Shown piece after piece: positions 1,014-33,982 of a DNA stretch of 64,000 nucleotides. Location: IMG/VR virus record IMGVR_UViG_3300027985_000843, positions 62,001 through 126,000 of that record, one strand, 5' to 3'. Under the pieces are notes generated by a model that did not search any database, had not been told where the DNA came from, and saw only the letters and a list, made by a program, of their open reading frames with translations. The translations under genes and the position numbers were made by a program. Every line of letters begins with the position of its first letter. Position 1 is the stretch's first letter.

Positions 1014-1360
1014 GACTCGACATCATACACCGAACCGCCCTCCCGCACGCCCAGCTCTTCCTCACTGAGGTATTCGGGGTGCCACCCGGCATGCACCTCT
1101 TGGTGGCAGTTGGAGCACAGCAGCACGCACTTGCTCAGCTCGGGCTCGATGGCCTGCCACGACAGCCGAGAGCTGATTTCGAAGTCCTTCTCCCGTGGGT
1201 CCATGTGATGGAACACCATGGCTGCCGGGCACTTGTCGTAGCCGCAGATACGGCACTTGCCACCGAGGTGAGCGATGGCCCTGTCTTTGACCTCTCGACG
1301 CCGCTGGGCTGCCTCGAAGTTTCGCTGCCAGCGGGCGTCAAGTTTCTCTGCGATCGTCAC
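977..1360 (-). CDS. HNH endonuclease (zinc-binding, phage type)
   Basis: CRICG...FHHMDP...KCVLLCSNCHQEVH pattern (CxxC, HH, N-CxxCH). Confidence 0.85.
   Translation of the reverse strand: MTIAEKLDARWQRNFEAAQRRREVKDRAIAHLGGKCRICGYDKCPAAMVFHHMDPREKDFEISSRLSWQAIEPELSKCVLLCSNCHQEVHAGWHPEYLSEEELGVREGGSVYDVESWDLGHHEDPKE
1026..1031 (-). promoter_or_regulatory. Class A motif (CGGTG-TATGAT)
   Basis: 12 nt upstream of ATG 1013. Confidence 0.45.
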
Positions 1361-1362
1361 TG

Positions 1363-1767
1363 CTAGCGAGCTGCCTTGTCGATTCGCTCTTCGGCTCCCT
1401 TGCTAGGAGCTTGCGGCATTGTCGTGCGGAGACGCTCGCCTGCCCACTTGGCTAGGAGCTGGAAGTCCGTGTAACCATCGAGACCATGCTTATCAGCAGC
1501 CCGACCGAGCCAGTAGTCTGCCGGCTTCTCCCGGTCGTCGCCCATCATCTTGATAGCTTCCGATCGAATCTTCTGGAACAGCTGCTTGTACTTCGCCTTG
1601 GGAAGTTGACCCCCGGCACCTGCAACCCGATCGGCGATGTCCCGCAGCTTACCTGCTAGGACGTCGCGGTCGGGCTTGCCGCCGGGGCCGTGGCCCTGGA
1701 TGAAGGCCATCAGGGAGCGGAGTTCCGCTTGCAGCTCCTGGGGAGACGCGATCTTCTGCATAGCCAT
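1363..1767 (-). CDS. Hypothetical protein, candidate virion-associated; start reassigned to ATG 1767
   Basis: ORF 1363..1815; the upstream in-frame part overlaps the divergent promoter region. Contains helical ...LRDIADRVAG. Confidence 0.75.
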   Translation of the reverse strand: MAMQKIASPQELQAELRSLMAFIQGHGPGGKPDRDVLAGKLRDIADRVAGAGGQLPKAKYKQLFQKIRSEAIKMMGDDREKPADYWLGRAADKHGLDGYTDFQLLAKWAGERLRTTMPQAPSKGAEERIDKAAR

Positions 1768-1774
1768 GGTACGG

Positions 1775-1787
1775 CATAGGAAGATCC
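1775..1787 (-). promoter_or_regulatory. Class B motif GGATCTTCCTATG
   Basis: 7 nt upstream of ATG 1767. Confidence 0.45.
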
Positions 1788-1789
1788 TC

Positions 1790-1795
1790 GGTGTA
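1790..1795 (+). promoter_or_regulatory. Class A motif (CGGTG-TATGAT)
   Basis: 10 nt upstream of ATG 1806. Confidence 0.7.
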
Positions 1796-1805
1796 TGATC
1801 TCCCC

Positions 1806-2030
1806 ATGGACCCAAACGAATGCCTTGCTCAGTTGCGGGAACTGGCCGCTAAGACGGTCGGCGAGCAACACCCCAACCTGGACGCTGAGGCCGCGTCAGC
1901 TTACCGCATGGCCGAACTGTTCGAAGGGCTCGACCAGTGGATCAAGCGGGGCGGTTTCCTCCCCGACGATTGGAAGCAGAAGCCCGACCAAGACGTGTCC
2001 CCGGACCTCCGGGAACTTCGCTCACACTAG
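1806..2030 (+). CDS. Small phage protein (MDPNECL...LDQWIKRGGFLPDDW type)
   Basis: ATG at 1806 is exactly 10 nt after GGTGTA. Resembles a small helical phage protein family from memory, not verified by search. Confidence 0.75.
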   Translation: MDPNECLAQLRELAAKTVGEQHPNLDAEAASAYRMAELFEGLDQWIKRGGFLPDDWKQKPDQDVSPDLRELRSH

Positions 2031-2031
2031 G

Positions 2032-3153
2032 TCACACGGTCGGCTCAAACCGAACCATGACCTCGGGTGGGATGGGCATACCCAGCACGTAGTGGGCGAA
2101 CGTCTCAGCGAAGTCCTCCCCCACGCCCGTCTTGGCGTACTGACTCACCGTGACGGTGTTGTTGTCCCCGATGAACACGTACTTCCGACCGGGCCGAACG
2201 AAGTTCCGTTCGAGCCACATCTCCCCTCGCTTGTATGCTGCGGTAGCATCCTTCTGCGACATCCCCGAGCCTGAGAAGGTATCCTTGAAGTATTCGATCA
2301 AGGGGACGTTCGGGTCCTTGAGGAACCCCACGGCCTTCGCAGGAGAGAAGTCCCCTCGAACAAGAGCCTGCCACATGTCCTGACGCGCCTCAAGAGTGAT
2401 ACCCTCTCCCTTGGAGTAGTTGTCCTCGTAGGCGTCTCTCTGGGGCCCTGAGAGCTTCTTGTGCCAGTAGCGGTGTCCAAGCTCGTGGACGAAGGTGTGG
2501 ACGTCGCTGAAGCGGAACCTAGCCTCCGCATTGAGCAAGACTATGTCGGGCGACTCCTTGTACATGCCCGCCCAGCTCTTCCGGCCCTTGTCCTCGGACC
2601 CACCGACGAGATAGACATCCCCGTACAGAATGCTACCGAAGCCCTTGGACTGTATCTTGCTCGAAGCGTCATCCAACAGCTTCATGGCCTCCGCATACTC
2701 TTCCGGGCGGTAGCCGAACTTGTTGATGATCTTGAACGGCCCGTGCTGGAAGTCCTTCTCGACCGTCCGATACGAGTCGAGGCGGTCCTGGACCCTCACG
2801 AGGGACTTGAGGGAATCCTCGATGCTTTCGAGCTGGATCGAAATCCAGGAAACAGCATCTTGTGTGGGGCCGCTCAGGTTCTTCTCAGCGAACGGATACT
2901 TGAGACGATGCAACCACTGAAGGACGCTCTTCATCTTCCGTTGCTCGTCCTTGCGCTCGAATCGAACACCATCGAGCATGGTCGCAAGAGGGCTCAGCTG
3001 CTCGCCCATCTTCCGGAACAGTTCGACGGCCCCCTCGGGGTCCTCTCGCAACTTCCGCTCGATCTGCGGGGCCATCTTCCGGAACAGCTGGACGTAGTCC
3101 TTGACCTTCGCGGCCAGGATGTATCGAGCTACGACCTTTCGGACGTCCGTCAT
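2032..3153 (-). CDS. Zincin-like metallopeptidase domain protein with N-terminal KVVARY motif
   Basis: HELGH (2473..2487) and downstream YAKT..GEDFAE (EDFAE at 2104..2118). ATG 3153 overlaps the upstream TGA (ATGA). Confidence 0.8.
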   Translation of the reverse strand: MTDVRKVVARYILAAKVKDYVQLFRKMAPQIERKLREDPEGAVELFRKMGEQLSPLATMLDGVRFERKDEQRKMKSVLQWLHRLKYPFAEKNLSGPTQDAVSWISIQLESIEDSLKSLVRVQDRLDSYRTVEKDFQHGPFKIINKFGYRPEEYAEAMKLLDDASSKIQSKGFGSILYGDVYLVGGSEDKGRKSWAGMYKESPDIVLLNAEARFRFSDVHTFVHELGHRYWHKKLSGPQRDAYEDNYSKGEGITLEARQDMWQALVRGDFSPAKAVGFLKDPNVPLIEYFKDTFSGSGMSQKDATAAYKRGEMWLERNFVRPGRKYVFIGDNNTVTVSQYAKTGVGEDFAETFAHYVLGMPIPPEVMVRFEPTV

Positions 3154-6100
3154 CGCTGGCCCCTGTTCGCCAAGTAGCGGGCGATGACGCGAGCCATCCG
3201 GATCTCTCCCGGGATGGTCACGTTGAGCCACTTGCGAATTTGGGGGAGGACCGTTCGAGGGCCGTAGGCGACCAGCATGCCGACAGCCTCACAGAACGCC
3301 TCCTCAGAGTTCTTGTTGGCGTACCCTGTGATGGGGTTGTTGGGGGTAGGCATTGTCGTGGTGCCCTCTTCCAACAGATCCTCGAAGTCTTGCTTCTTGG
3401 CAAGCTCTCGGTGGCGGCCGGCGTAGCCGGGCCACACAGCGTCGAGCTGGAGAGACAGAACGGGGTCCTTGTCCGCCAGGTACTCGGCGAACTCGTAGGA
3501 CCACATGTCCCCGGGCCACTTCGCGAGAAGCTCCCGGATGTCGAGGTCACCGTAATCCCCGTAGATGGCCTCCGACCAATAGTCCTTGGCTCCCCCGCCC
3601 AACAACTTCCACAGGTGGTGGCCCATCTCATGGGCCATCGTCTTGACGAGCTTGTCAGGGTTGCTGCTGACAGCTGCGGAGGCGTAGATCGTGATGGTCC
3701 CGTCGTGGTTGTATCGACCGCCTTCCCCGATCGTGGCTTCGAACTCGAAGATCATCGGGAGCTGATTCTTTGCCATCCACGGCATCCGCTCTGCGGACCT
3801 CTTGCGGAACAGCTTGAGGGCCTCCTTGAGCATCGCCATCTCTTCGGCGTTGTAGCGATCGTTCTGCTTGTAACCCCGGACTTCGATCCTGAAGCCCTCC
3901 AAGATGACTTGCTCTCGACCTGGAACCTCAGCCTGCAACGTCGCGGGCTCGTCGGGGTCCTTGTATCGGCGGTTGTTCGGGTCTTCATAGTAGTCGATGG
4001 CCTCCCGCACCGCTTTCCAGAACACCTGAGCCTTCCGCCTGATTCGCTTCTCCCACGCCTTGACATCCTGCTGGTACCGGCTGAATCGAACCGTCTCAGG
4101 CATGAAGTCCGTAGCCCTGTCGATGGGCAAGTCGGCTTCGATGTAGAAGTCCCATCCGGACTTGCGAAGCATGTAGTCGATGTTCTTGCGGACGTTTTCC
4201 TTGATCCGCTCATCGTACTTGAGCGACTTGTTCAAGAAGCGCTCGAACATCAGGTCGGCGAACCGCTTGCCCCACACATTGAAGGCTTCCTTGAGCCGGA
4301 TGGCCGTATCATAGTCCTTGACGCGAGGGACGTTCTTCATGAGGGTGAGGAAGTCAGCCCTCATCTTGTCGACCCATGGTTGATCGATCTGGACCAGCTC
4401 GGTTGCGTATCGAGCCACAACACGATTGACGAGGGAGGCCGCGAACGGAACCGGCTCGTAGTCCTCATCGGGGGTTACTTTGCAAGTCGGGCACGCCTGG
4501 CACACGTCGTCAGCCCGCTCTTTGAGCTGCTTGAGTCTACGCTTCTCCTTGGTCGCCCGTTCCTGTTCCTTGTACCAAGCATCCTCGTACTTGTCTTGGC
4601 CGGTCTCACACTTGCGCTCCAACCGTATTTGCTTCTGACGCTCACGCTCCATTTGGGCGATCTCTCGATCGGCGTTTTCCTGGAGCCACGCGTCATTCTC
4701 GTAGGGATGCTCCTCGATGTACTCCATGAACTGCTCGGCCCGTTCATCGGGGGTGCCTTTGAACTGGTTTTTGAGCTTGTTCCACAGGCCGTGATACTCG
4801 GACGGAATATTGTACTGTGCCCGCTCGTCTCGTTCCCTCCGACGTTCCCAGCCCCTCTGTTGTGGCGACAGCGCAATCCGGTCGGCCGACTTGTCCAGCC
4901 GATGCATGACCGTGCCGTCTTTCATGTACGTGTCTTCGAGGCCCGGGACAAGGTACTGACTCCGAAGCGTGGAAGCCTCGTGCCCGACAGCGGCAGCCGT
5001 TTCCTCCAGGGCCTTCTTGAACTCCTCCTTGAGGACGGCCTGCCGTTCCTTCGCGTCCGTGGGGAGCTTGCCCTTGCGGACAGCCTTGAGGCGCCGCTTC
5101 ATTTCCTCGTTGGCGTGCAGTCCCCGGATGTCTTTCGCCGTGATGTCGAACTTCTGAAGGTACGCATTGATCTTGGTCGCGTCGATCTTGCCTGTGTCAT
5201 GGCAGAACAGGCAGTCTTCGCCTTCCACGGCCTCGTAGGCATCCCGCAACGCCTTGACCAACGCTGCGCTGCTGACCGTTTTCTTCTGCTTGACGCCGGA
5301 CTTGCCAACGTAGGTGACCGTCGCCTTGCCTCGACCGAAGCTGACGTGATTCTTTTGCCAGCCGGTGACCCCGAAGTGACCATCCTTCGCTGAAGTGTCG
5401 TTGCCAACCCGCTCATACGTCTCGTCGATCAGCCCCACGGCCAGTGCCGTGAGGAACTTGTTCGGGTCGGAGGACTTGAGGTCCTTCGCCACCTGGGCCC
5501 GCAAGCCGTCGATGCTCTTGCGGAGCTTCTCGACGCGCTTCGCCTTCTCTCGGTTGCGGTGTTGGACCTGCCCTTCACTGTACTCGTAGACGGTCGTGGT
5601 TCCCTCACCGTCCTGCTTCGGAACCTGCTTCTTGTTCTTGTATCGAGCCGCCGTCCGCTTCTCCCGCTCGACCGGCTTGCCGTCGATGAGAATCTCGTGC
5701 GTCCGGTCAGCCCCATCGCCATCGACACCCGCGATGGCTTCACCGTCGACGTCGATGGAGGTCGAGTGGCCCACATCCCCAAGATACTTGATCTCGGCAA
5801 GCACCTTCTCGATGGCCTTGAGAGTGTCGCCCTCCACATCCACCTCGATAGTGTGGCGAGCCGCTTCCAGGTACCGGGCCACCACGCGTGTGGGGCCGTC
5901 TCCCCCGGGCCCATTCTCCCCGCACTCCCCCGTCTCGGGGCAGCGGTAGGCATCCCGGCCGTCGTCATAGATGGGCTCAGAGGGGCACTCAAGCAGGTCA
6001 GGGCCCGTTTGGCTAGGCAGGTCCCACAGGTGAGCCGCGACGACCCTGGTGGCCCCTCCTAGGGCCTCCAGGGCCGAGGTCACGCCGGGGATGACATCCA

Positions 6101-6425
6101 TGGCCGAGACCTCGCGAATGGGGACCCACTGATACTCGGACGATTCGTAGTTGAGCGTGGGCTCACCCTCCGAGTCGAACGTGTGGAAGTAGGTGACCGT
6201 CGCCGTGGGCATGTTGAGCGTGATGACCTTGGTCAGGTAGTTGACTGCGAGCCCCGCCTCTTCTTGCGTCTCCCGGATGGCCGCCTCCACCACGGCCTCG
6301 TCATCTTCGACACCACCCGTCGGGAAGTTCCACTTGCCGGGCATCCACGGAGCCGTAGGGCCTCGCTTGAGCAGCAGGACAGAGTCGCCTCGTTGAATGA
6401 TGGTGGCTGCAACGGTCTTGGTCAT
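3150..6425 (-). CDS. Multidomain fusion (1091 aa): Nudix hydrolase + unknown domain + DNA topoisomerase IB core + coiled coil + zincin metallopeptidase
   Basis: Nudix box GGVEDDEAVVEAAIRETQEEAGL; Topo IB motifs ERVGN, GKSG, AKDIR, VGH, SQYL; HEMGH (3618..3632) and YANKNSEEAFCE. ATG 6425 in ATGA overlap. Confidence 0.85.
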   Translation of the reverse strand: MTKTVAATIIQRGDSVLLLKRGPTAPWMPGKWNFPTGGVEDDEAVVEAAIRETQEEAGLAVNYLTKVITLNMPTATVTYFHTFDSEGEPTLNYESSEYQWVPIREVSAMDVIPGVTSALEALGGATRVVAAHLWDLPSQTGPDLLECPSEPIYDDGRDAYRCPETGECGENGPGGDGPTRVVARYLEAARHTIEVDVEGDTLKAIEKVLAEIKYLGDVGHSTSIDVDGEAIAGVDGDGADRTHEILIDGKPVEREKRTAARYKNKKQVPKQDGEGTTTVYEYSEGQVQHRNREKAKRVEKLRKSIDGLRAQVAKDLKSSDPNKFLTALAVGLIDETYERVGNDTSAKDGHFGVTGWQKNHVSFGRGKATVTYVGKSGVKQKKTVSSAALVKALRDAYEAVEGEDCLFCHDTGKIDATKINAYLQKFDITAKDIRGLHANEEMKRRLKAVRKGKLPTDAKERQAVLKEEFKKALEETAAAVGHEASTLRSQYLVPGLEDTYMKDGTVMHRLDKSADRIALSPQQRGWERRRERDERAQYNIPSEYHGLWNKLKNQFKGTPDERAEQFMEYIEEHPYENDAWLQENADREIAQMERERQKQIRLERKCETGQDKYEDAWYKEQERATKEKRRLKQLKERADDVCQACPTCKVTPDEDYEPVPFAASLVNRVVARYATELVQIDQPWVDKMRADFLTLMKNVPRVKDYDTAIRLKEAFNVWGKRFADLMFERFLNKSLKYDERIKENVRKNIDYMLRKSGWDFYIEADLPIDRATDFMPETVRFSRYQQDVKAWEKRIRRKAQVFWKAVREAIDYYEDPNNRRYKDPDEPATLQAEVPGREQVILEGFRIEVRGYKQNDRYNAEEMAMLKEALKLFRKRSAERMPWMAKNQLPMIFEFEATIGEGGRYNHDGTITIYASAAVSSNPDKLVKTMAHEMGHHLWKLLGGGAKDYWSEAIYGDYGDLDIRELLAKWPGDMWSYEFAEYLADKDPVLSLQLDAVWPGYAGRHRELAKKQDFEDLLEEGTTTMPTPNNPITGYANKNSEEAFCEAVGMLVAYGPRTVLPQIRKWLNVTIPGEIRMARVIARYLANRGQR

Positions 6426-7786
6426 TGTGCTTTTCCGTGAAGGTAGCGGTGCACCACCTGGAAGGCCAGCTTGGAGACAGGCTTGCCGCCAAATCCCGAG
6501 AGCCACAAGGTGCGACGCATCCGGTACAGAGCGTTGGGCGGCAACTTCTCTGGTGAAACCATGAACAAGACGAAGGTGTCGGCGAAGTCCTCTTTCTCGT
6601 CCGTGGTTCCATATTCGGTCGGAATCTGCAATTGCTCGTAGAGAGCCTTCAGAGCTTCCCCTACCTCAGGGTTCTCCCGCCGAAGAAGGTTGACCGTGTC
6701 GGGGGCGATGCGGAGTCCTGAGGAGTACCCCAGGCCCAAGATCTTCTTCTTGTGAGCAACCACCCTCTCCACTGTGCGATCGAAGTCAGGATCGTCTGGG
6801 GAATAGCCGTAGTTCGTTTTTACATAGAGCTGTGGATTCCGGATGACGTCGAAGAGTTGCTGCCCTCGCTTGGTGAGCCGAAATTGATTCGCCGCGATGA
6901 GCGGGTCACCCATCCCAGGGTCTCGAAGCCAGTAGGCAAATTTGACTTTGTCGAGCCCCTTGAGGCGGCGGGCCGTCTTGGCGGGGTTGAAGTCGTCTTT
7001 TTCGAGCAACGCGTAGTAGCGTTCCAGTTCGTTGGGCTTGATCTGATCCAACAAGCTTCGTGTGTCGTGGATGGGGTCCCAAGCACCGTCCCAGAACTCT
7101 CGGGCTTCTCCCTTGATGTAGGTCATGTGCACGAAGTGACCGAACTCGTGCATGAACGACCCCATAATCCACGATCCTGTTCCGAGCATCCGGTGGGGAC
7201 CGTCCTCGGTGAACATGGTCTTGCCCAACACGATGGTTTGCGCGTGCGAAACGTAAAGAGCGCCAGCATCATCCGTGTCCTGAAGGACAACTTTCTTGAC
7301 TCCTTCCTGGAGGAGTTCCGGCACACCGCGCTTCTTGAAGGTAGCCCGCAGAAAGTCGATCGCATCAAACAGCTTTTGCAGCCGCTTGGGCCCAAGACGG
7401 AACTGATCCGTGACTGGAAAGCCCTTGTACTGGAACTGGGCCGGCCCGATCTGGCCCAAGAACTGTTGGAGGGTCTGCTCGAACCGGTCGAGTTGGCCCA
7501 ACAGCTCCTGGTAGTCCTCCGGTTTTTGGTTGTCTGACAACGCCAAGAGAACGGGGCCTCTCGGCCGCATCGCGTCCAGAGTGGCCTCAGCGTCTCCACC
7601 GAAAGCCAGCAAAACCCAGTCAATGAAGCCCTTTTGCGTTGTGAGCATCAGGGCGTTGGGGGCGAACGTGTAGCGATCGAACACGTCCTTAGCCTGAGGA
7701 GTACCGAGGCGCACGGCCCGCACTTCTTGGGCAGCCCTCTGGAATGCTTCCAGATCCTTCTTGGCCTCTTCCCACTCTCGGGTCAT
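6422..7786 (-). CDS. Zincin-like metallopeptidase domain protein with C-terminal QVVHRYL motif
   Basis: GALY..., HEFGH (7136..7150), YGTTDEKEDFADTF. Confidence 0.8.
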   Translation of the reverse strand: MTREWEEAKKDLEAFQRAAQEVRAVRLGTPQAKDVFDRYTFAPNALMLTTQKGFIDWVLLAFGGDAEATLDAMRPRGPVLLALSDNQKPEDYQELLGQLDRFEQTLQQFLGQIGPAQFQYKGFPVTDQFRLGPKRLQKLFDAIDFLRATFKKRGVPELLQEGVKKVVLQDTDDAGALYVSHAQTIVLGKTMFTEDGPHRMLGTGSWIMGSFMHEFGHFVHMTYIKGEAREFWDGAWDPIHDTRSLLDQIKPNELERYYALLEKDDFNPAKTARRLKGLDKVKFAYWLRDPGMGDPLIAANQFRLTKRGQQLFDVIRNPQLYVKTNYGYSPDDPDFDRTVERVVAHKKKILGLGYSSGLRIAPDTVNLLRRENPEVGEALKALYEQLQIPTEYGTTDEKEDFADTFVLFMVSPEKLPPNALYRMRRTLWLSGFGGKPVSKLAFQVVHRYLHGKAQ

Positions 7787-8205: not shown

Positions 8206-8219
8206 CACCTTCCCTGACG

Positions 8220-9970: not shown

Positions 9971-10260
9971 CACGACCTCGGTTTGCTGGCGTTTTTGATG
10001 AGCCACGAGTGGTACCTGTCCGCTCGCTCCTCCGCATCAGTTACACCGAGACGCCGCAAACCCCCCTCGAAAATTCCTCGAACTAGCGCAGGTGCCGCAA
10101 CAGGATCCGACATCGTTCGCCAACACGGCATGCAGTAGTCGAGCTTGTCTGGAGGCTCCTGCCCTTGACTACTGATGGTTTGCTTTTCCTTCTCCGTGAG
10201 CGTTATCGTGTGGATGCTGGCCTCGTCGAAGTCTCTGTGGCACATGCAGCAAGTCACCAT
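9970..10260 (-). CDS. Small zinc-ribbon-like protein
   Basis: CCMC ... CMPC. Start reassigned to ATG 10260. Confidence 0.65.
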   Translation of the reverse strand: MVTCCMCHRDFDEASIHTITLTEKEKQTISSQGQEPPDKLDYCMPCWRTMSDPVAAPALVRGIFEGGLRRLGVTDAEERADRYHSWLIKNASKPRS

Positions 10261-10835: not shown

Positions 10836-11336
10836 TCAGTCCTCCATGTCAAAGTCGAAGTCATCGTCTGACGACAGCCGGCCGTACGCGGTCTTGGGAC
10901 GGCGGGGCCGATAAGGCTTCTCTGCCAGCCTCTTCCGATCCTTGGTGTTCATGAACGAGAATTTGACCTTCGCCTTGCTTACGCCCCTCTCGTGGTGAAT
11001 GAGGAGAATTTCACCCGGTCGAAGGCGTAACGCAGGGTTGAAGAAGATCGAGCCCCCGCTGCTGATCATGCCGCTCGGGACCCAATCGTCCAGGGGCTTG
11101 GTCATCTCCCCGTTGCGGGAGATGTTGAGGATGCGCCCCTTCGAGGCCCGCATCGGAAGGGCCATGAACGGCCAGTCCTGCGGAGTGTGTACCACCCGAA
11201 CACCGTCGACAGGCGTGTCTGGGACTTCGATCTTGGACCCCGACCAACTCGCCAGAGTGAGGGTCCTGTACTCGGAGCTGTGGAACGTGACCTTCCACAG
11301 CTGGCCGTCCGTCCAGACAATGTCGCCCAGCTTCAT
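10836..11336 (-). CDS. Hypothetical protein
   Basis: ATG 11336 lies 10 nt after GGTGTA; acidic C-terminus. Confidence 0.7.
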   Translation of the reverse strand: MKLGDIVWTDGQLWKVTFHSSEYRTLTLASWSGSKIEVPDTPVDGVRVVHTPQDWPFMALPMRASKGRILNISRNGEMTKPLDDWVPSGMISSGGSIFFNPALRLRPGEILLIHHERGVSKAKVKFSFMNTKDRKRLAEKPYRPRRPKTAYGRLSSDDDFDFDMED

Positions 11337-11346
11337 GCGGGCAGTA

Positions 11347-11352
11347 TACACC
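11347..11352 (-). promoter_or_regulatory. Class A motif (TGGTG-TATACT)
   Basis: 10 nt upstream of ATG 11336. Confidence 0.7.
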
Positions 11353-11354
11353 AA

Positions 11355-13179: not shown

Positions 13180-13568
13180 GTCCCTTCATCGCCAGCCGTT
13201 TCGAGCACTTCAGGCACCGCTTCTTGAGCAAATGCCCGTATCTCCCTGGTCACACTTGCTGCTGTCCGGTTGATTGTGTCCTCGCTCAGAAGCTTGGCAA
13301 ACAACAGATGGGTCAGGCGGTGTTGGATCTCCTGACCTTGCTTGAGGGTCTCTACCTCAGCATTCAGCGTCTCCATGTCGGCCACCATGGCCGCCATCAA
13401 CCTGTGGGCCTCTTGGATGTCGGACTGCACTGACGTCAAGACAGGGAGAATGTTCTCCATCCCCTGTAGTTGTTTCAGTGCCTGGATGGCCGTGCTCAAG
13501 TTGCTGCTCGCCTTGGCGACCTTGGCCTTGGCCTTGGGCAGCGGAGGCCACTTCTTCTTCGTCTTCAT
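13176..13568 (-). CDS. Coiled-coil hypothetical protein
   Basis: Heptad-like helical composition. Confidence 0.7.
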   Translation of the reverse strand: MKTKKKWPPLPKAKAKVAKASSNLSTAIQALKQLQGMENILPVLTSVQSDIQEAHRLMAAMVADMETLNAEVETLKQGQEIQHRLTHLLFAKLLSEDTINRTAASVTREIRAFAQEAVPEVLETAGDEGT

Positions 13569-13609
13569 CTGTTGCTACTACGCTCGGGGTTGAGAACAGT
13601 TCGGAAGAA

Positions 13610-15071: not shown

Positions 15072-15082
15072 TGGGTTGATCT

Positions 15083-15088
15083 TACACC
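15083..15088 (-). promoter_or_regulatory. Class A motif (CGGTG-TAAGAT)
   Basis: 11 nt upstream of ATG 15071. Confidence 0.7.
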
Positions 15089-15118
15089 GGCAAGACCAAC
15101 CGCAAGCTCGGGAAACGC

Positions 15119-16396: not shown

Positions 16397-16398
16397 GC

Positions 16399-20694: not shown

Positions 20695-20699
20695 GCCAC

Positions 20700-22407: not shown

Positions 22408-22408
22408 G

Positions 22409-24007: not shown

Positions 24008-24031
24008 CAGTCATTCCTCCTACACACTTCA

Positions 24032-24037
24032 TACACC
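24032..24037 (-). promoter_or_regulatory. Class A motif (CGGTG-TATGAA)
   Basis: Immediately after the terminator; 24 nt upstream of ATG 24007 with AGGAGG SD in between. Confidence 0.65.
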
Positions 24038-24058
24038 GATCACTTGGCAGAAAGACGC

Positions 24059-24094
24059 AAAAAGCCCCGCCCATTCAGGGAGTGGACGGGGCTT
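24059..24094 (-). terminator. Rho-independent terminator
   Basis: Minus strand AAGCCCCGTCCACTCCCTGAATGGGCGGGGC followed by TTTTT, directly after the stop at 24130. Confidence 0.8.
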
Positions 24095-25322: not shown

Positions 25323-28265
25323 CGTAAGGTTCACTAGGTCGTAGGTGCCCGCCCCGAGATTGCGGTCGGCCAGTCCCCGGCCAAACTCCTCAGGGTCAAT
25401 CTTAATGCCCAGCTTCGGGTCAATCAAGATGCCCCCACTTTCGTCGATCACTTGGAGCGTCTTGAACTTGCTTTGACCGCTTTCGCCGCCGAACGGCTCA
25501 GCCCCCTTGATCACCTGCGCCACAATCCGAACAGACTGCCGAGTAAGGTAGGTGCTCGGAATAGCAAACACGGCCACCTGACCATCTTGACTCGGAACAG
25601 GCTTCGGCTTAGAGGTCGGCGCGGGCGGGGGAGTCGAAGCCTTTGAGGTAGTCGTAGGCTTCGACTCCGAAGCCTGCATGGGTTCTGGTTCGGGAGCGTT
25701 CTCGTCATCCTTGACCAACGGAGCATCCGCCGGTGCCTTGTTGGACCGAGGTTCGTCCTCGAAGGGCAGACGCCAGTTCTCTCCCTTGGGCTCGACGATG
25801 TCCAAGAACCACTGGGGCAAGGGCTCTTCGGGCTTGTCCTTGTTCAAGAAGTACGTCGTCTTGCCCTTCATGACGTCTTCCCAGTCGAACTTGGCGTCCC
25901 AGCTCTTGCCGACCAGGGGCTCGACGTAGAAGGGGATGTCCCAACCCACGATGCGAGGAGGACTCTCCATGACACGCACGAGTTCGGGCAGGACTTCCAT
26001 GAGCCGATCCTTGCGAACCTCGAAGACGATTTCATCGTGCACGGTCATGAGCATGCGGACAGAATCGTCACCGTTGTCCTTGAGCCAACCCTTGCTGTGA
26101 AGAAGCTTGGTCAGCTTGACCAAGCTGATCTTCAGGATGTCAGCACCCGACCCCTGAATCGGGTAGTTCGTGCTCTGTCGCTCGCAAGATGCTCGTATCT
26201 TCCGAGCGTCCTTCTCATCCACCACCATCCGAGAGGGGTGCTTCTTGGTTCGGGTCGTGTACTCACCCACCTTGATGTCGGCGTCGGGGATGGACACGAA
26301 CCGACCAAACCCCGTCGTAATGCCCCTGTTCTTCTTGACAGATGTGTGCTGCTGCTTGACCCATCCGGAGAACACAGGCACGGAAGCATCGAAGGCTTCC
26401 TTCTTGCGGGCCGCCTCGACCTTATCGCAGCCGGTGGCGCGTTGGATGGCACCCACACCGCCACCGTAAATCAGCGAGAAGTTGGCGATCTTGCCTGCCG
26501 TTCGTTCCTTCTTGTGGTTCTTCGTGATGTGCGGGCCAAAGAACGCCTGGGCCGTAAGGGTGTGCAGGTCGCCGGTGCCCTCCAGGAACTCGTGCCGCCA
26601 CTTGGGCTCTTTCGACACGCATGTGACGACGCGAAGCTCTTGGCCGGCGTAGTCGATCTTGACCAAGACATAGCCCTCGTGAGCCACGAAGAGCCGGCGG
26701 AGAGAGTTGGCGACTTTCGGCCGCTTCGGGTCGGTCTTGGCAGGTATCCCGTGGATGGGCACGCCCGCGAAGCCTTGGTCGGGGTCTCCTTGAGGTGCCG
26801 TGAATCGACCCGTGGCAGCTCCCGTCTGCTGGAAGTTAAAGCGCAGCTGTCCGTGCTCGTCCGTGTTGGATGCGAGCTTGGTGAGGTACGTCCCGATGAT
26901 CTTGTCGATCTGTCGGTACATCACGATCCACCGAAGGACCTCCACCTCCTGGTTGTTCTCGTAGATGGCCTCCAGTGTCTTGGCGTCCGTCTTGTACTGT
27001 CCGCTGGACTCGTTCTTTTCCGGCTTGTTCGGTAAGTCGAGGCCGCGTTTCGTGAACAAGAAGTCCGAGAGCTGCGCAGTGCTCGATGGGTTGAACTTCT
27101 CGAAGCCCTTGGCCTTCGCAGCCGCCACGAGCTTGTCTTCGAACTCCTGCCGCTCGGTGTACGCCTCTTCGAGCAAGGCATCGATCTCGCCCTTGTCCAC
27201 GAGCGTGCGGGAGCGCTCCATTTCCCGGGCACCCTGGGCCGACTGCTTCTCCAGACGAAGGATTCCTCTGAACTTGGGCTTGTATGACGGCCCCACAGGG
27301 CTCTTGTAGCTGTACTTGAGGCCCTTAACCGTGTGTTTCCAGGCGACCTTCTTGGTCTCGCACAGAAGCTCCGTGCAGATGGCATCCGAGCAAGCGTACA
27401 GAACGACGCTCGAACCATCCGTCGGCCGGAGGACGGAGAACTTCCGCAGCTCCTTCGGAACCACAGGCTCGAAGAGCTGCGCGAATTTGATCATCTCATA
27501 GGGGTAGATCGCCCCTGTCTCCGGGTCCTGGATGCTCAGATGCTCCTCGGCATTCTCCTTGAGCCCCAGAATGTCTTCTGTGTACAGCACGTAGGTGGAC
27601 AGCATGCCGTCCTGGAAGCTGTCCGGGTGCCAGAAGTAGATGCCCGTGATCGGATACAAGAACTCCTGGTCGAACTTCGCGTGCCAGAAATAGATGACGA
27701 CGCGGGGAGGTATCTCGAACTGGGGCGAGGCATACTGGTCCGGCGCATCCTTCACCACCACCGGCTGAGACGCCAAACACAGCCGCTTGATCTCGGCGTT
27801 CGTCTCCTGGAGGGGAAGGTTGGGATTGGGTTCACCCATTTCCGCCAAGAATTTGTGCCCGATCGGAAGATAGTGCCCGACGCCCTTGACCGAGATGCAG
27901 TAGCCGACGATCTTGTGACGCGTGTGCGGCTTGCCCTCCTTGTCGTAGTCGATTCGGTTGTCCAGACCCTCGGTCTCCAAGTCCAGAGCACATCTGCCAT
28001 GCTCAATGGCCGAATCCACCAAGGCTCTGACTTCGTCGATGGTCTTGACCAGCCGGAACTCGTGGAACTGCATCCACGGTTTTCTGAGTGCCTCCGTCTT
28101 GATTTGGTCCGCTGTTTTGATGTCGCCAACGAAGTCTTCCAGGTCATCGCAACCCACCCCATCAACGGGGGGCGGTGGCGTCTCGACTTTCGGTGTGGCC
28201 TTCGGAGCTGCTTCGGCGAAGCTCTCCAGGTCGAGGTCGTCATCCACCACGTTCATGTCTTCCAC
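25320..28265 (-). CDS. polA: DNA polymerase family A with 3'-5' exonuclease, no 5'-3' nuclease domain
   Basis: Exo I LDLETEG, Exo II WHAKFD, Exo III YACSDA; motif A DYAGQELR, motif B RTAGKIANFSLIYG, motif C TVHDEIVF. Confidence 0.95.
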   Translation of the reverse strand: MEDMNVVDDDLDLESFAEAAPKATPKVETPPPPVDGVGCDDLEDFVGDIKTADQIKTEALRKPWMQFHEFRLVKTIDEVRALVDSAIEHGRCALDLETEGLDNRIDYDKEGKPHTRHKIVGYCISVKGVGHYLPIGHKFLAEMGEPNPNLPLQETNAEIKRLCLASQPVVVKDAPDQYASPQFEIPPRVVIYFWHAKFDQEFLYPITGIYFWHPDSFQDGMLSTYVLYTEDILGLKENAEEHLSIQDPETGAIYPYEMIKFAQLFEPVVPKELRKFSVLRPTDGSSVVLYACSDAICTELLCETKKVAWKHTVKGLKYSYKSPVGPSYKPKFRGILRLEKQSAQGAREMERSRTLVDKGEIDALLEEAYTERQEFEDKLVAAAKAKGFEKFNPSSTAQLSDFLFTKRGLDLPNKPEKNESSGQYKTDAKTLEAIYENNQEVEVLRWIVMYRQIDKIIGTYLTKLASNTDEHGQLRFNFQQTGAATGRFTAPQGDPDQGFAGVPIHGIPAKTDPKRPKVANSLRRLFVAHEGYVLVKIDYAGQELRVVTCVSKEPKWRHEFLEGTGDLHTLTAQAFFGPHITKNHKKERTAGKIANFSLIYGGGVGAIQRATGCDKVEAARKKEAFDASVPVFSGWVKQQHTSVKKNRGITTGFGRFVSIPDADIKVGEYTTRTKKHPSRMVVDEKDARKIRASCERQSTNYPIQGSGADILKISLVKLTKLLHSKGWLKDNGDDSVRMLMTVHDEIVFEVRKDRLMEVLPELVRVMESPPRIVGWDIPFYVEPLVGKSWDAKFDWEDVMKGKTTYFLNKDKPEEPLPQWFLDIVEPKGENWRLPFEDEPRSNKAPADAPLVKDDENAPEPEPMQASESKPTTTSKASTPPPAPTSKPKPVPSQDGQVAVFAIPSTYLTRQSVRIVAQVIKGAEPFGGESGQSKFKTLQVIDESGGILIDPKLGIKIDPEEFGRGLADRNLGAGTYDLVNLT

Positions 28266-28696
28266 TAATCACCTCCTCGAACCACCACAACATACACCCC
28301 GGCCCGCCACTGTTCGATCGCCTCCGACGCAGCCCGACGCAAGGCATCGTCCGCTTCCGTCAGCTCGAAGCACCACGGCATCTTCTGAGACGCATGGTGG
28401 CACTCAGGCCCCTGAAGAGGGCACCGACGATCGTTGGGGGGCCGCTTCTCTCGAAACCAGCACTGCCGGGCCTCCAAGGGGACTTTTCGAAGAGCGCCCT
28501 CGGGAGGTATCCCGAGGGCATCCACGAGTGGGCGCGACCAACCATGCAGGGCATGATCGATCGTGTCCTTGTCCACCACGGTCACCAAATCACCATAGGC
28601 CGTGCCCTTCAGGACGGCCCAGTTTTTCTCCCATCCGTTCAGGAGGAGCAAGTGCAGCTCCCCCTTCTCGCGGGTCAGTAGTTTGACGTGCCTCAC
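28265..28696 (-). CDS. Cys-containing hypothetical protein, start reassigned to GTG 28696
   Basis: GTGA overlap with the stop of hidden ORF 28693..28857. Confidence 0.65.
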   Translation of the reverse strand: MRHVKLLTREKGELHLLLLNGWEKNWAVLKGTAYGDLVTVVDKDTIDHALHGWSRPLVDALGIPPEGALRKVPLEARQCWFREKRPPNDRRCPLQGPECHHASQKMPWCFELTEADDALRRAASEAIEQWRAGVYVVVVRGGD

Positions 28697-29512: not shown

Positions 29513-29515
29513 GCG

Positions 29516-30976: not shown

Positions 30977-31836
30977 CAGCGGCCTCCCTTTCCCTTCTTG
31001 AACTTCGACTTTGGCTGGGCCTTGGGCCTCGACAGAAGCTCCACCTCGTCACCCGCGTCGTCCGACTCATCAGGTTCGGGTTCGTAGGGGTCAGGCTCCT
31101 CCTGGCTGAACTCCTCCTCCGGCTCTACGTCGGTGACCGACAATCCCAAGTCATCGTCGCTGCGTTCGCCCACGTACCGCCTCCCAGGGTCGACCGGCTC
31201 AACATCGACGGATTCGAAGTGCGTTCGGAGATACTCCTCCACTTCTTCACTCCGAGAATGCAGCCACGGTCGGTCTTCCTCGTGGATGACCCACACAGCA
31301 GCCTGCATGGCTTCCCGGATCATCAAAGTCTCCAGCAAGGCACCGGCCGCCGCCCTGTTGGGGTAGCCGATAAAGCCAAGCCGAAGGATGATGAGGTCGT
31401 AGTCCTCCACGAAATCCGACAAGGAGTTGAACACCTCGCGGACCTCCCTGGAGGCCAACGGTTGGTTGCGATACTGCTCGTTGCCGACGTAGACGTTCTT
31501 GATTTGCTGATCTGTGATGATCTTGAAGTTGAATTTCAGGCCCTTGCAGCCCAGGACCCACTTGAGGTGAGGCAGCAAGTTGGGCCACGGGCAGTCGAGG
31601 AACAGGTTATCCCCTGTCCGGTCCACGGAGGGCGGTTCCCCCTTCGTCATCTGGAACAGAGGGCTGGACGTCACGTGGGTGGAGCTACTGATCTCCGGAC
31701 CCAGCTTCTCTCGGAGCAAGATTGAGAGCATGTTCCGACAGGGCCGGTCCGTAAATTCATCGACGGGCACCGAGCCATTCCCATCGCAGCCGGGAAGTCT
31801 CGGCAGCCCACACCTCGGGCATTTGGATTCTGCCAT
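30973..31836 (-). CDS. Hypothetical protein, possibly degenerate DnaC/IstB-like helicase loader
   Basis: DLIILRLGF...ALLETLMIRE...AVWV pattern resembles the loader C-terminal half; position immediately upstream of DnaB; no P-loop seen. Confidence 0.45.
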   Translation of the reverse strand: MAESKCPRCGLPRLPGCDGNGSVPVDEFTDRPCRNMLSILLREKLGPEISSSTHVTSSPLFQMTKGEPPSVDRTGDNLFLDCPWPNLLPHLKWVLGCKGLKFNFKIITDQQIKNVYVGNEQYRNQPLASREVREVFNSLSDFVEDYDLIILRLGFIGYPNRAAAGALLETLMIREAMQAAVWVIHEEDRPWLHSRSEEVEEYLRTHFESVDVEPVDPGRRYVGERSDDDLGLSVTDVEPEEEFSQEEPDPYEPEPDESDDAGDEVELLSRPKAQPKSKFKKGKGGRW

Positions 31837-31845
31837 TAGTCTCCC

Positions 31846-33627
31846 TTACACCGACTTTGAATTTTGCAGCATCTTGACAAGGCTTCGCAGGTCGCTGCCA
31901 CCTGTGTCGAACTTGAGAGCCCCAACAGCTCCCTCGCCCAGCACCTTGTCGATGAACCCTCGCTTGTTTCGGAGCAGGGTCAGCACGTGGTGGTCGATCG
32001 TCTTGCTGTCGGCGGCCTTCTCTTTGCCCGGCCGCATTGCCACGAGATGGAACACGAGCACGCCCTTGTGGGGCGAGCCGATTCTGACCATTCGTCCAAG
32101 GATCTGGAGGTAGTTTCCCCACGACCAGGGGGCGTCGTAGAAGACGGTGGCCGCCGCCATCTGGAGGTTGATGGCTTCCGACCCGGCATCTGTGATGAAC
32201 ACGACGTTGATGCCGCTGTCCGGGTCCTGGAACTTCTTCTGGTTGCTGCGTCTGACCTTGTCGTCCGTCTCCTTGCCCGTGATGCGGGTCGACTCGATGC
32301 CCTGCTTCTTCAGGATGGCCTGGAGTCTCGGCACGAGGGAGGCGAAGCGGGTGTAGACGATGACCTTCTGATCGTCCAGCTGCTCCGAGAGCAGGTCGAC
32401 CAATGCCTGTTCCTTCGACCCCAGGGAATTCACCCTGTATCGCTTCGGATCGTCAATGAGGTCGGCGTTGACACCCGAGCCCTCACCGAACCCCAACATT
32501 GCGAGCGAATTGACGACCTGCTGGCAGTAAATGAGGGACACCAGAGCCTTGTTGTCCTCGTAGACCTTCATCTCGCCGTCGCCCAGCTCGAACACGCCGG
32601 TGAGGGCCTCTGCGTACTTCAGCTCCTCGGGACGCGACAGCTCAACCACGATCTCTCGCGTGGTGAGCGTGGGCAGCTCTTTCGCCACCATGTGCTTCTT
32701 GCGGCCAAGGAAGAACGGATCGATGGTCGATCTGAAATGGTCGAGGTTCTTGTACCCCTTGATGATGGGAACTCGGGCCTTGCCCATCTTCTTCAACTCG
32801 ACGAAGCAATAGGAGTCGTGGAACTTCGATTGGGTGGTGAACAGCCCGGGCCGAACCACGCCGTAGATGCAGTAGCCCTCGAACAGTCGGTTCTTCAGAA
32901 GGGTGGCCGTCAGGCCGTAACATCTGTTCGCCTTCCGGCTCAGGAACTGAGCGATTTCCCACGTCTTGGTACGCTTCGACTTGAAGGCCGTCGCCTCGTC
33001 GAACACCACCGTGAGCTTTTCGATCGATCCCGTGATTTCGTCGAGGAGCCCTGGCTTGACAGGCTTCTTTGGATCTGGCTTGCCGTCCGGCTTCAATGGC
33101 TGAAAGCCGCCCTCATTCCAGTCCCGAACCAGCAGGGCGTAGTTCGTGATCAAAACGGCAGGTTTCTTGCTGTCTCGCCACTTCTGGTATGCCTCAGTTC
33201 GGAGGTCAAGAGCTGACTTGCCCTTGGTCGGCTTGGCCGAGGCCACGATGGGCTCGACCCCCACGAGGAAGCGTCTGATCTCGTCCGCCCATTGCTCGAT
33301 GGCGCTTTTGGGGGCAACCACGATGACCTTGTGGTCTGATTCGGCCTTCGAGTCCCACAGGTAGGCCATGGCGGCAAGAGTCTCCACCGTCTTGCCCAAA
33401 CCACAGTCATCCCCAAGCACCATCCGCTTGAGCGTCATCATGTGATAGACGCCCTGCACTTGGTAGTATCTGAGGGTGAAGTCTTCCTCACCCCCTCCGA
33501 TACTCGTGATTCTCTGTCTGAGCCACTTGCATGGCTTCAAACTCACTGTCTTGGATGCCCGTACTTCTTTGAGTCTCTCGTAGGCTTTCGCCATCGAAGG
33601 AGACAACTCCGCCATCGGTTCCAGCAT
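31846..33627 (-). CDS. SNF2-family (SF2) helicase/ATPase
   Basis: GDDCGLGKT, VFDEAT, LTAT, GSEAINLQ, QILGRMVRIG. ATG 33627 lies 10 nt after GGTGTA. Confidence 0.9.
   Translation of the reverse strand: MLEPMAELSPSMAKAYERLKEVRASKTVSLKPCKWLRQRITSIGGGEEDFTLRYYQVQGVYHMMTLKRMVLGDDCGLGKTVETLAAMAYLWDSKAESDHKVIVVAPKSAIEQWADEIRRFLVGVEPIVASAKPTKGKSALDLRTEAYQKWRDSKKPAVLITNYALLVRDWNEGGFQPLKPDGKPDPKKPVKPGLLDEITGSIEKLTVVFDEATAFKSKRTKTWEIAQFLSRKANRCYGLTATLLKNRLFEGYCIYGVVRPGLFTTQSKFHDSYCFVELKKMGKARVPIIKGYKNLDHFRSTIDPFFLGRKKHMVAKELPTLTTREIVVELSRPEELKYAEALTGVFELGDGEMKVYEDNKALVSLIYCQQVVNSLAMLGFGEGSGVNADLIDDPKRYRVNSLGSKEQALVDLLSEQLDDQKVIVYTRFASLVPRLQAILKKQGIESTRITGKETDDKVRRSNQKKFQDPDSGINVVFITDAGSEAINLQMAAATVFYDAPWSWGNYLQILGRMVRIGSPHKGVLVFHLVAMRPGKEKAADSKTIDHHVLTLLRNKRGFIDKVLGEGAVGALKFDTGGSDLRSLVKMLQNSKSV
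31847..31852 (-). promoter_or_regulatory. Class A motif (CGGTG-TAAGGG)
   Basis: 10 nt upstream of ATG 31836; overlaps the SNF2 stop. Confidence 0.55.
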
Positions 33628-33637
33628 CCCGCAACTA

Positions 33638-33643
33638 TACACC
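33638..33643 (-). promoter_or_regulatory. Class A motif (CCTTCGGTG-TATAGT)
   Basis: 10 nt upstream of ATG 33627. Confidence 0.75.
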
Positions 33644-33654
33644 GAAGGTGATAG

Positions 33655-33963
33655 TTACCGACGGATGAAATGAGCCTTATTGCGACGAAACGCTATCTGC
33701 TGAGCCTCGTCCATGGCCCTATGAATTTGCTCGGTGGTCGCGCCAGCATCCATAGCCGTTCGCAGAGTGGCAGAGACCTCCCGCGACAGAATAATCTCCG
33801 CCTGTATGGGGACCTTCGCTTTGCGCGGCATCCGCATATCCGCATCAAAAGACGACGTCACGATAGCCGGCGTCTTGTGCAAGTACACCTTCACCCATGT
33901 CGCCCTCAGGCGACGCAGGCTCAGGAACACATTCATCCTTCGAACACGACTCAGACGATTCAT
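33655..33963 (-). CDS. Basic hypothetical protein
   Basis: ATG 33963 lies 13 nt after GGTGTA. Confidence 0.6.
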   Translation of the reverse strand: MNRLSRVRRMNVFLSLRRLRATWVKVYLHKTPAIVTSSFDADMRMPRKAKVPIQAEIILSREVSATLRTAMDAGATTEQIHRAMDEAQQIAFRRNKAHFIRR

Positions 33964-33976
33964 GTCTGTAGTACGA

Positions 33977-33982
33977 TACACC
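33977..33982 (-). promoter_or_regulatory. Class A motif (CCTTCGGTG-TATCGT)
   Basis: 13 nt upstream of ATG 33963. Confidence 0.6.

Follow-up and report, generated by a model that had tools for sequence, protein, structure and literature searches.

A start-codon-spaced GGTGTA word in a clade of huge phages as a candidate -10-only promoter of leaderless mRNAs

A hydrothermal-vent phage genome and its huge-phage relatives carry, in front of many genes, the oriented word (C/T)GGTGTA at a fixed distance from the start codon. We call this element class A. The word, its orientation and its fixed spacing are real, and the signal is much stronger than was first noted. On balance, and in the absence of RNA data, we lean towards class A being a clade-specific early/middle promoter that consists of a -10 element only, is probably read by a phage sigma factor and gives leaderless mRNAs.

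The source record (G000) is a 371,739-bp virus genome from a hydrothermal-vent metagenome, with a GC content of 60% and an estimated completeness of 78%. The window is the whole 64-kb stretch of this record that was analysed. It contains 38 copies of GGTGTA compared with 14.2 +/- 3.9 in shuffled sequences, and 12 copies of YCGGTGTAW compared with 0.95 +/- 1.05; neither count was reached in any of 100 shuffles. Over the whole record, YCGGTGTAW is present 73 times and the reversed word nine times. The distances from the 259 GGTGTA copies of the record to the first downstream ATG form a single sharp peak, with 50 copies at 10 nucleotides (N10), 23 at N11 and 0 to 8 at other spacings. Control words give 0 to 5 at these two distances, and nine control hexamers 0 to 10 at any spacing before ATG. 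A genome-wide check of upstream regions by an unbiased scan (all hexamers at 26 spacings before ATG) ranked GGTGTA-N10 first (z = 22). In G000, 75 of the 418 gene calls start N9 to N12 downstream of GGTGTA. The 16 copies located past 37.8 kb in the window are background: 11 are on the plus strand, all antisense to minus-strand late genes, and nine of these 11 lie inside called genes, where the coding strand reads TAC-ACC.

The sites identified in the window are as follows ('promoter' is to be read as putative throughout).

1011-1033, minus strand: class A core TCGGTGTAT, N12 to ATG 1013 of a 74-aa ORF (789-1013)
1788-1808, plus strand: class A promoter TCGGTGTAT, N10 to ATG 1806 of a 74-aa ORF (1806-2030) with a positive coding score
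10041-10049, minus strand: class A core TCGGTGTAA (GGTGTA 10042-10047) in an intergenic gap, 71 nt before ATG 9970; possibly a leadered promoter
11334-11354, minus strand: class A promoter TTGGTGTAT, N10 to ATG 11336 of a 166-aa gene (10836-11336)
11642-11662, minus strand: class A core TCGGTGTAA (GGTGTA 11655-11660) within gene 11355-12569, N10 to an out-of-frame ATG with no 50-aa ORF; an orphan or an internal promoter
15069-15090, minus strand: class A promoter CCGGTGTAA, N11 to ATG 15071 of a DUF1848 protein (14250-15071)
16394-16414, minus strand: class A promoter TCGGTGTAT, N10 to ATG 16396 of a ClpX-like ATPase (15119-16396)
20692-20712, minus strand: class A promoter CCGGTGTAA, N10 to GTG 20694 of an 84-aa gene, the first of the NT5C/ThyX operon
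24005-24039, minus strand: class A core TCGGTGTAT, 24-nt leader with GGAGG, ATG 24007 of an AAA ATPase
28263-28298, minus strand: GGTGTA-TGTT (GGTGTA 28293-28298), 27-nt leader with GAGGAGG, GTG 28265 of a family A DNA polymerase (PolA)
31834-31854, minus strand: class A promoter TCGGTGTAA, N10 to ATG 31836 of a 287-aa gene; kept in 6 of 12 orthologous loci
33625-33645, minus strand: class A promoter TCGGTGTAT, N10 to ATG 33627 of an SNF2 helicase
33961-33984, minus strand: class A core TCGGTGTAT, N13 to ATG 33963 of a 102-aa ORF
36641-36689, minus strand: class A core CCGGTGTAT (GGTGTA 36682-36687), 38-nt leader with AGGAGG, ATG 36643 of a GIY-YIG/NUMOD3 endonuclease

The ORF at 789-1013 is doubtful as a gene: its coding score is weak and it overlaps the end of a plus-strand gene. 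A terminator-like hairpin (24065-24080) is located just upstream of the AAA ATPase core.

The initial annotation, made from the sequence alone, had given ten of these sites, and all its coordinates and spacings held: N10 at 1806 (plus strand), 11336, 16396, 20694 (a GTG), 31836 and 33627, 11 nt at 15071, 12 at 1013, 13 at 33963, and 24 at 24007 with GGAGG in between. The hexamers it had read at such sites (TATGAT, TATACT, TAAGAT, TATAGT and TATCGT) are also correct. It had not listed the leadered PolA and GIY-YIG copies, the orphan at 11655-11660 or the copy at 10042-10047. Its claim that the motif corrects ORF start calls held as well. The GTG inside GGTGTA is in frame, five codons upstream of the N10 ATG, and is chosen by the ORF caller (for example, 33642 instead of 33627, and 1791 instead of 1806). 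This GTG was rejected as the true start: TAA or TAG follows it directly in many copies, and at such GGTGTAA and GGTGTAG sites the immediate stop means that the word is not coding.

Genes with a class A start lack a Shine-Dalgarno (SD) sequence. An SD-like 4-mer is present within the last 10 nt of 9 of the 75 class A starts, compared with 8% of random 10-mers, and ATG is the start codon of 89% of them compared with 71% of strong-SD genes. Nor does the word behave as an SD or start-associated signal, which would pair with the 16S 3' end 5 to 9 nt before the start; only GGUG could pair, and this is 12 nt from the AUG. No phage IF1, IF3 or S21, factors that possibly favour leaderless initiation, was found.

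The class A consensus is y-C-G-G-T-G-T-A-t-g-k-T-nnnn-g-C-ATG. Information in the PWM is confined to positions -18 to -7 and -1/+1 and is approximately zero from -45 to -19. There is thus no -35, and the requirement for one is absent as in extended -10 promoters. The implied register (T-12, A-11, C-1 and A+1, the last being the A of the ATG) has the geometry of the -10 element of the sigma-70 family and, with the N10/N11 peak, meets that of a leaderless promoter. T-12 and A-11 never vary. TG stands immediately 5' of the TA (-14/-13) in each of the 53 N10 sites, whereas the canonical extended -10 has it at -15/-14. T-7 is found in 48 of 75 to 72% of G000 sites, depending on the count, and is also kept in the relative G007; in two others, G004 and G002, it carries no information although GGTGTA is invariant there. 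The initial reading as GGTG + TAnnnT, an extended -10, thus needs refining: the conserved element is GGTGTA at -16 to -11. With its TG offset by one position and T-7 dispensable in two relatives, class A appears distinct from the canonical TGnTATAAT. Neither does it meet the criterion for a bipartite ECF-type promoter (-35 ..AAC and -10 CGT.. with a 16-17 nt spacer), since it has no -35. Such a layout does fit a separate, lineage-variable promoter motif, class B (TTCCGAAC-N17-CGTAGTA). Canonical sigma-70 promoters and intrinsic terminators are present only at shuffle level in positions 1-40 kb of the window.

Class A is a property of the clade. GGTGTA-N10-ATG is the top hexamer/spacing signal in G000, G004, G007 and G002 (GC 55-64%), and enrichment over the reversed word, approximately 3- to 50-fold, extends to all nine relatives (89-529 kb, GC 43-64%); in each of these nine related huge phages the element precedes dozens of genes. 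Individual positions are only partly conserved, with 28 of 75 orthologous N-termini (37%) keeping the motif. The ClpX orthologues of G002, G004 and G007 all retain GGTGTA-N10-ATG, and the SNF2 helicase has GGTGTA 10-13 nt before its ATG in six of nine related loci, two of these being identical there. Sixteen diverse bacterial genomes, none of them from Deinococcota, showed no enrichment. INPHARED contains no near-identical phage DNA; the closest PolA match, LR745208.1 (31% identity), shows no enrichment (9 vs 4). Attempts to identify the host were uninformative: a search of genome contigs with the ClpX sequence alone found no kin, a ClpX alignment search gave kin at 36-46% identity over many phyla, and a protein atlas search gave no useful taxa.

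Several contexts indicate that class A acts on transcription and not on translation. Cores lie approximately 24-38 nt upstream of genes with their own SD (for example, GGAGG). Besides the 75 close starts, 16 genes have a core at a distance of 22-80 nt, and in several of these a good SD separates the core from the start codon. A tRNA gene has its 5' end 11 nt downstream of another core. There are five divergent, back-to-back class A pairs, one of which fills the 33-bp gap between two start codons and leaves no room for leaders. A further core is located between a Cas12m-like gene and the CRISPR array of that gene. Class A genes concern replication, nucleotide metabolism, ClpX, ligase, methylase and many small genes. 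No class A element precedes the portal, terminase, protease or baseplate genes; structural genes have an SD and lack class A.

Two tandem sigma-like genes are conserved across the clade. The product of one (303 aa) matches Pfam Sigma70_r2 with 29.3 bits (cut-off 24), over profile positions 1-38 only. In structural comparisons its model superposes on domain 2 of sigB, SigW, RpoE, sigma70, sigma32, SigC and other sigma factors, at best with Z 7.9 (rmsd 2.2 A over 79 residues), and sigma domain 2 makes up approximately half of its top 50 matches. It has no Sigma70_r4 match, and residues 218-303 match assorted helical and winged-helix folds, none of which is sigma 4. All three complete relatives retain the 303-aa protein together with a second, ECF-like one. 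Weak structural matches of a 286-aa sigma-like protein include the phiEco32 sigma complex (9m7y_F). The models are of limited quality (pLDDT 62-70, all Z scores below 8). Sequence-profile searches of the sigma-like proteins against the PDB gave no sigma match, and Foldseek gave nothing below E = 0.26 for either model, with sigma factors over-represented among the weak rows. Support for a sigma-70 family protein with domain 2 only is thus moderate, and the assignment, predicted from a model, remains weak. Class B could not be paired with one sigma gene by phylogenetic profile because both genes are clade-wide. A further phage protein, of 225 aa, is built of sigma region 4-like HTH units. No Rpb1, Rpb2 or T7 RNAP match in Pfam, and none to PF00562, PF00623 or PF00940, points to a phage RNA polymerase of the phiKZ/AR9 or T7 type, and the DFDGD motif occurs in no large protein of G000, G002, G004 or G007; since G000 is 78% complete, a polymerase gene could be situated in the missing part.

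In the mechanism that we propose, host core RNA polymerase would associate with a factor of the sigma family. The likeliest candidate is the sigma-like protein encoded by the phage itself, with domain 2 and no recognisable domain 4. The factor would bind GGTGTA (-16 to -11), DNA opening would begin at A-11, and RNA would start 11 nt downstream. At about three-quarters of gene-proximal class A sites (C-1, A+1), +1 would be the A of the ATG. A transcript starting there would have no 5' leader or SD and would be translated as a leaderless mRNA; class A would thereby drive early/middle functions. The sequencing runs that contain this stretch are all DNA, so that start sites are an inference from geometry. 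Promoter function and the identity of the reading factor are likewise inferred. The initial proposal of a leaderless promoter for replication and accessory genes is nevertheless supported by every sequence test run: the geometry, the lack of an SD, the preference for ATG, the SD-led leadered copies, the tRNA copy, the divergent pairs and the lack of the word at the portal, terminase, protease and baseplate genes. Where that proposal left open a host- or phage-specific element, the latter is favoured by conservation of the word over 43-64% GC, the absence of enrichment in the 16 bacterial genomes and the co-occurring, conserved sigma-like genes.

The rival that survives best, and which remains possible, is that the host primary sigma reads the motif as a -35-independent, extended -10-like promoter and that the leaderless layout copies a host habit (as in Deinococcus-Thermus or Actinobacteria). 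By analogy with gp39 of Thermus phage P23-45, a phage protein may then disable sigma region 4, and the 225-aa protein could interfere with host sigma. T-12, A-11, T-7 (72% in G000), C-1 and A+1 fit sigma-A geometry. Deinococcus radiodurans has TANNNT 6-7 bp before approximately one-third of its ORFs (PMC12340547), the middle and late promoters of P23-45 are of the extended -10 class without a -35 (PMC3950348), and the sample is from a hydrothermal vent, with a GC of 60%. Since T-7 is kept in G000 and G007 in the Deinococcus-Thermus TANNNT layout (PMC12340547), host sigma is not excluded. Against this explanation, T-7 is uninformative in G004 and G002 despite their invariant GGTGTA, the TG is one position off the canonical place, the word is common to phages of 43-64% GC that are unlikely to share one host, and the 16 bacterial genomes show no enrichment, though none is from Deinococcota.

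A translation signal acting at the RNA level (an unusual ribosome-binding or start-associated sequence in polycistronic mRNAs) is very unlikely. Start-associated sequences are reported to occur in Cluster K mycobacteriophages, and GGUG could pair with CACC, which lies close to the 3' end of the 16S rRNA. The fixed distance to the start codon and the many sites only a few bases after the upstream gene would suit such a signal. However, with 12 nt separating it from the AUG, GGUG is too distant for an SD, the conserved UA is unpaired with 16S, a tRNA 5' end follows the word at equal spacing, genes with their own GGAGG follow it at 24-38 nt, and the divergent pairs require promoters in a 33-bp gap that is otherwise empty. 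Mycobacteriophage L5 has asymmetric 'stoperators', and a comparable operator, bound by a repressor or activator of the phage and with the real promoters elsewhere, would explain many oriented copies of an asymmetric 8-9-mer, two of which make a perfect 14-bp palindrome (ATACACCGGTGTAT), but it too is very unlikely: an operator needs neither the single-base register with the start codon nor the C-1/A+1 pair, class A sites carry no other promoter-like signal, and 71 of 73 copies are non-palindromic.

The preferred reading, a clade-specific promoter served by a phage factor, has partial counterparts. Like class A, the middle and late promoters of Thermus phages phiYS40 and P23-45 (extended -10 class) are of the -10 type only, without a -35, and are used after the earliest phase (PMC3950348); most phiYS40 middle and late mRNAs are reportedly leaderless (Sevostyanova et al. 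2007). Those promoters are read by host sigma-A and have TG at the canonical place, whereas the class A clade has the GGTGTA word, a T-7 that is dispensable in part of the clade, and its own sigma-like genes. In Deinococcus-Thermus, the '-10 motif adjacent to ORFs' is a TANNNT with the start codon 6-7 bp downstream. It shares with class A the 6 nt between hexamer and ATG, coexisting SD-led genes and leaderless mRNA, the last being inferred for class A (PMC12340547). It is cellular, sigma-A-dependent and degenerate, whereas class A has six invariant bases up to -16 and belongs to a phage clade. T4 late promoters (TATAAATA) are read by gp55, a sigma-family protein cut down to a domain 2-like core. 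They resemble class A in being -10-only (8 bp, no -35) and in relying on a phage-encoded, sigma-like factor that lacks a functional domain 4, which for class A is inferred. They differ in sequence, in giving late mRNAs with leaders and an SD, and in that class A would be early/middle with no known clamp-dependent activation. ECF-like phage sigma factors (such as phiEco32 gp36 and the SPO1 gp28 and gp33/34 cascade) redirect host core polymerase to phage promoters (PMC12276001, PMC8948821, PMC13401047), but these are bipartite and leadered, and nearer to class B than to class A.

To our knowledge, the transcription programme of no metagenomic huge phage is known, and only a handful of cultured phages have one described. 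(C/T)GGTGTA-N10/11-ATG provides a sequence rule that corrects gene starts where callers take the motif's GTG, and would outline the early/middle regulon of ten or more huge phages. It also offers a candidate sigma/promoter pair of unusual specificity, with six invariant bases at -16 to -11, no -35 and a dispensable T-7. A 12-bp portable promoter that needs no UTR would be of practical interest. If the reading is true, wholesale leaderless expression beside SD-led late genes bears on translation bias during takeover. A bolder reading, which we find attractive but would not yet back, is that the clade (240-530 kb, some members with CRISPR-Cas12) runs a self-contained cascade of its own sigma factors, in which at least two promoter classes (the invariant A and the lineage-variable B) start RNA on the start codon, and at least a quarter of phage genes and even a suppressor tRNA are leaderless. 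Were this so, phage genes could go on being translated after a shutdown of SD-dependent initiation or of host transcription.

The class A core, (C/T)GGTGTA, is concentrated at a fixed distance before start codons. GGTGTA is found 38 times in the window against 14.2 expected and the longer YCGGTGTAW 12 times against 0.95; across the whole virus record, the latter occurs 73 times compared with 9 for the reversed word. The distance from GGTGTA to the first downstream ATG (whole record, n = 259) is exactly 10 nt in 50 cases and 11 nt in 23, with 0 to 8 cases at each other spacing, and nine control hexamers reach a maximum of only 10 to 11 at any spacing. When all hexamers are scored at spacings 0 to 25 before every ATG, GGTGTA-N10 (10 nt between GGTGTA and the start codon) ranks first (z = 22). 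In oriented upstream intergenic DNA there are 74 copies against 7.5 expected, a ten-fold enrichment. The ten positions and spacings reported in the initial annotation were all correct on re-check. That annotation would have been refuted by a motif equally common at random positions with the same spacing; this is not the case, as the shuffle, control-hexamer and spacing counts all favour the motif.

The window spans bases 62,001-126,000 of a single 371,739-bp IMG/VR record (CheckV completeness 78%, GC approximately 60%) with 47 tRNA genes and one tmRNA. A minus-strand island (genome 247554-276034) carries 46 of the tRNA genes and the tmRNA (tag ANDNSAMPVAA). The runs containing window DNA are hydrothermal-vent metagenomes, with no RNA run among them. 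Gene calling with a codon-usage model gave 418 genes at 88% coverage. The relevant features are:

Window 1-37.8 kb: replication/accessory module (NUDIX-topoisomerase IB fusion, DUF1848, ClpX-like ATPase, C-N hydrolase, ThyX, 5'-nucleotidase, AAA ATPase, family A DNA polymerase, primase, DnaB-like helicase, SNF2 helicase, GIY-YIG endonuclease)
Window 3150-6506 (-): 1118-aa fusion of a NUDIX domain and the catalytic core of a eukaryotic-type topoisomerase IB
Window 35885-36643 (-): GIY-YIG/NUMOD3 homing-endonuclease-like gene at the replication/structural module border, carrying a class A promoter of its own and a leader with an SD
Window from 37.8 kb: structural module, large proteins with weak tail/virion matches
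Record approximately 138-212 kb: continuation of the structural module (portal, terminase, prohead protease, baseplate hub)

Past window 37.8 kb, all 11 plus-strand copies of GGTGTA are antisense to minus-strand late genes and 9 of them fall within gene calls, reading TAC-ACC along the coding strand. The copies in this region are background.

Alignment of the 53 N10-ATG sites gives the consensus y-C-G-G-T-G-T-A-t-g-k-T-n-n-n-n-g-C-A-T-G. Information is limited to -18 to -7 and to -1/+1; there is no conservation at -45 to -19 and class A therefore has no -35 element. Numbering from the ATG, whose A is +1, places the invariant TA at -12/-11, a frequent T at -7 and a C at -1. This layout is the open-complex geometry of a sigma-70-family factor, with start sites that are inferred rather than measured. 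A canonical extended -10 is ruled out because the TG directly abuts the hexamer (the canonical TG lies one base upstream). In window 1-40 kb, canonical sigma-70 promoters are no more frequent than in shuffled sequence.

Altogether, 75 of the 418 genes start 9 to 12 nt from GGTGTA. Only nine of these starts have a Shine-Dalgarno (SD)-like 4-mer in the last 10 nt, near the random level of 8%; such a 4-mer is present at -18 to -5 in 210 other genes. ATG is used at 89% of class A starts compared with 71% of strong-SD genes. GGTGTA cannot be coding, since a stop codon directly follows the in-frame GTG in the GGTGTAA and GGTGTAG copies. It is also independent of the start codon because it lies 22-80 nt upstream of 16 further genes; in the window, the AAA ATPase, PolA and GIY-YIG genes have the core upstream and a good GGAGG-type SD within the leader. 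One tRNA gene (anticodon TTA) also has a core 11 nt ahead of its mature 5' end, in the same register as before ATGs. This tRNA (genome 1336-1430) would read the UAA stop; TAA terminates 50 of the 418 gene calls, and there is no sign of genome-wide recoding. Another core separates a Cas12m-like gene from its CRISPR array. At this locus (genome 349108-352940, outside the window) the array has 19 repeats, each of approximately 36 nt, and adjoins the 764-aa Cas12m-like protein (PDB 23vw_A, E 3.9e-20); a single repeat copy also occurs at genome 6013. Back-to-back class A copies are found at five divergent gene pairs. At genome 322,480-322,514 only 33 bp separates the two start codons and no leader is possible, as the gap holds only TACACC|GGTGTA and two spacers. 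Where two divergent cores abut, at 322480-322514 and 326171-326184, they make a perfect 14-bp palindrome, ATACACCGGTGTAT. In the absence of measured start sites, class A is likely to act on transcription and give leaderless transcripts, and is probably a promoter with +1 at or beside the ATG.

Nine related virus records (89-529 kb, GC 43-64%, three complete) were recovered via the SNF2 helicase. GGTGTA-N10/11-ATG exceeds the reversed word in all nine (for example, 88 vs 3, 51 vs 1, 63 vs 3 and 44 vs 4; weakest, 23 vs 8), and GGTGTA-N10 is the top hexamer/spacing combination in three fetched whole or in large part. The yGGTGTA core and C-1 are invariant among the compared phages; T-7 is retained only in the present record and its relative G007, and carries zero information in relatives G004 and G002. 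Six of the nine related loci have GGTGTA 10-13 nt ahead of the SNF2 orthologue's ATG (identical there in two), although the flanks have diverged. The N10 arrangement is kept before ClpX in 3/3 genomes examined and the motif at 28 of 75 orthologous N-termini overall. A scan of 16 bacterial genomes from many phyla revealed no GGTGTA enrichment; nor was any found in LR745208.1, a huge phage that is more distantly related.

The phage (78% complete record) has no detectable RNA polymerase of the multisubunit or T7 type, and a host core enzyme is therefore assumed. Two adjacent sigma-like genes lie at genome 282,040-283,859 (-). The 303-aa product passes the Pfam Sigma70_r2 threshold and its model, which contains an insertion, aligns with the domain 2 structures of numerous sigma factors (best Z 7.9), with no sigma-4 match; the 286-aa product has weak ECF-type matches over two domains. 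Both are conserved, mostly adjacent, in the closest relative, all three complete relatives and G005. A further 225-aa protein (genome 218306-218983 (-)) has two Sigma70_r4-like HTH stretches without region 2, possibly a regulator or sigma-4 mimic.

The main rival, that host sigma-A reads class A, is not excluded and the host is unidentified. In its favour, sigma-A of Deinococcus-Thermus uses a TANNNT placed 6-7 bp ahead of ORFs (PMC12340547), and phage P23-45 has promoters without a -35 that host sigma-A reads (PMC3950348). Against it are the loss of T-7 in part of the clade, the invariance of GGTGTA in phages that differ widely in GC and the lack of enrichment in the 16 bacterial genomes. On balance, we lean towards a phage-encoded factor as the source of specificity, over host sigma-A acting by itself. 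By inference only, the domain-2-only 303-aa sigma would suit the -10-only class A, a pairing resembling T4 gp55. The initial reading, in which class A is a promoter for leaderless early/middle transcripts, is supported, and refined to a clade-specific GGTGTA at -16 to -11 with a phage sigma as probable reader.

A second motif, class B, is TTCCGAAC-N17-CGTAGTA-N5(-7)-ATG. Its approximately 60 copies lie mainly at the record ends (0-13 kb and 290-371 kb) before small genes, with one in the window:

Window 13568-13625 (-): sole class B copy, before the ATG at 13568

Class B varies by lineage: TTCCGAAC...CGTAGTA in this record and G001, GGTTGATC-N16-TGTAGGA in G004 and GGGTTAAGATC-N13-TGTAGT in G007. 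The 303-aa gene is preceded by its own phage's class B promoter in this record, G001 and G005. A leadered class B promoter drives the sigma-like pair; further upstream, TTGACT-N18-TAGGAC with A-tracts may be a weak host-type promoter. The words AGATGAAAA and CCAGATCCA recur upstream of SD-led structural genes (intergenic regions, genome 151-200 kb), possibly as a third (late) class. We infer that class B is a bipartite ECF-sigma-style promoter (..AAC at -35, CGT at -10) with its unmeasured RNA start on the ATG; it would suit the two-domain ECF-like 286-aa sigma, again by inference alone. Class B lends support to the leaderless-promoter reading of class A and, since it too is placed relative to the ATG, the leaderless design would be a general habit of the phage rather than an accident of one motif.
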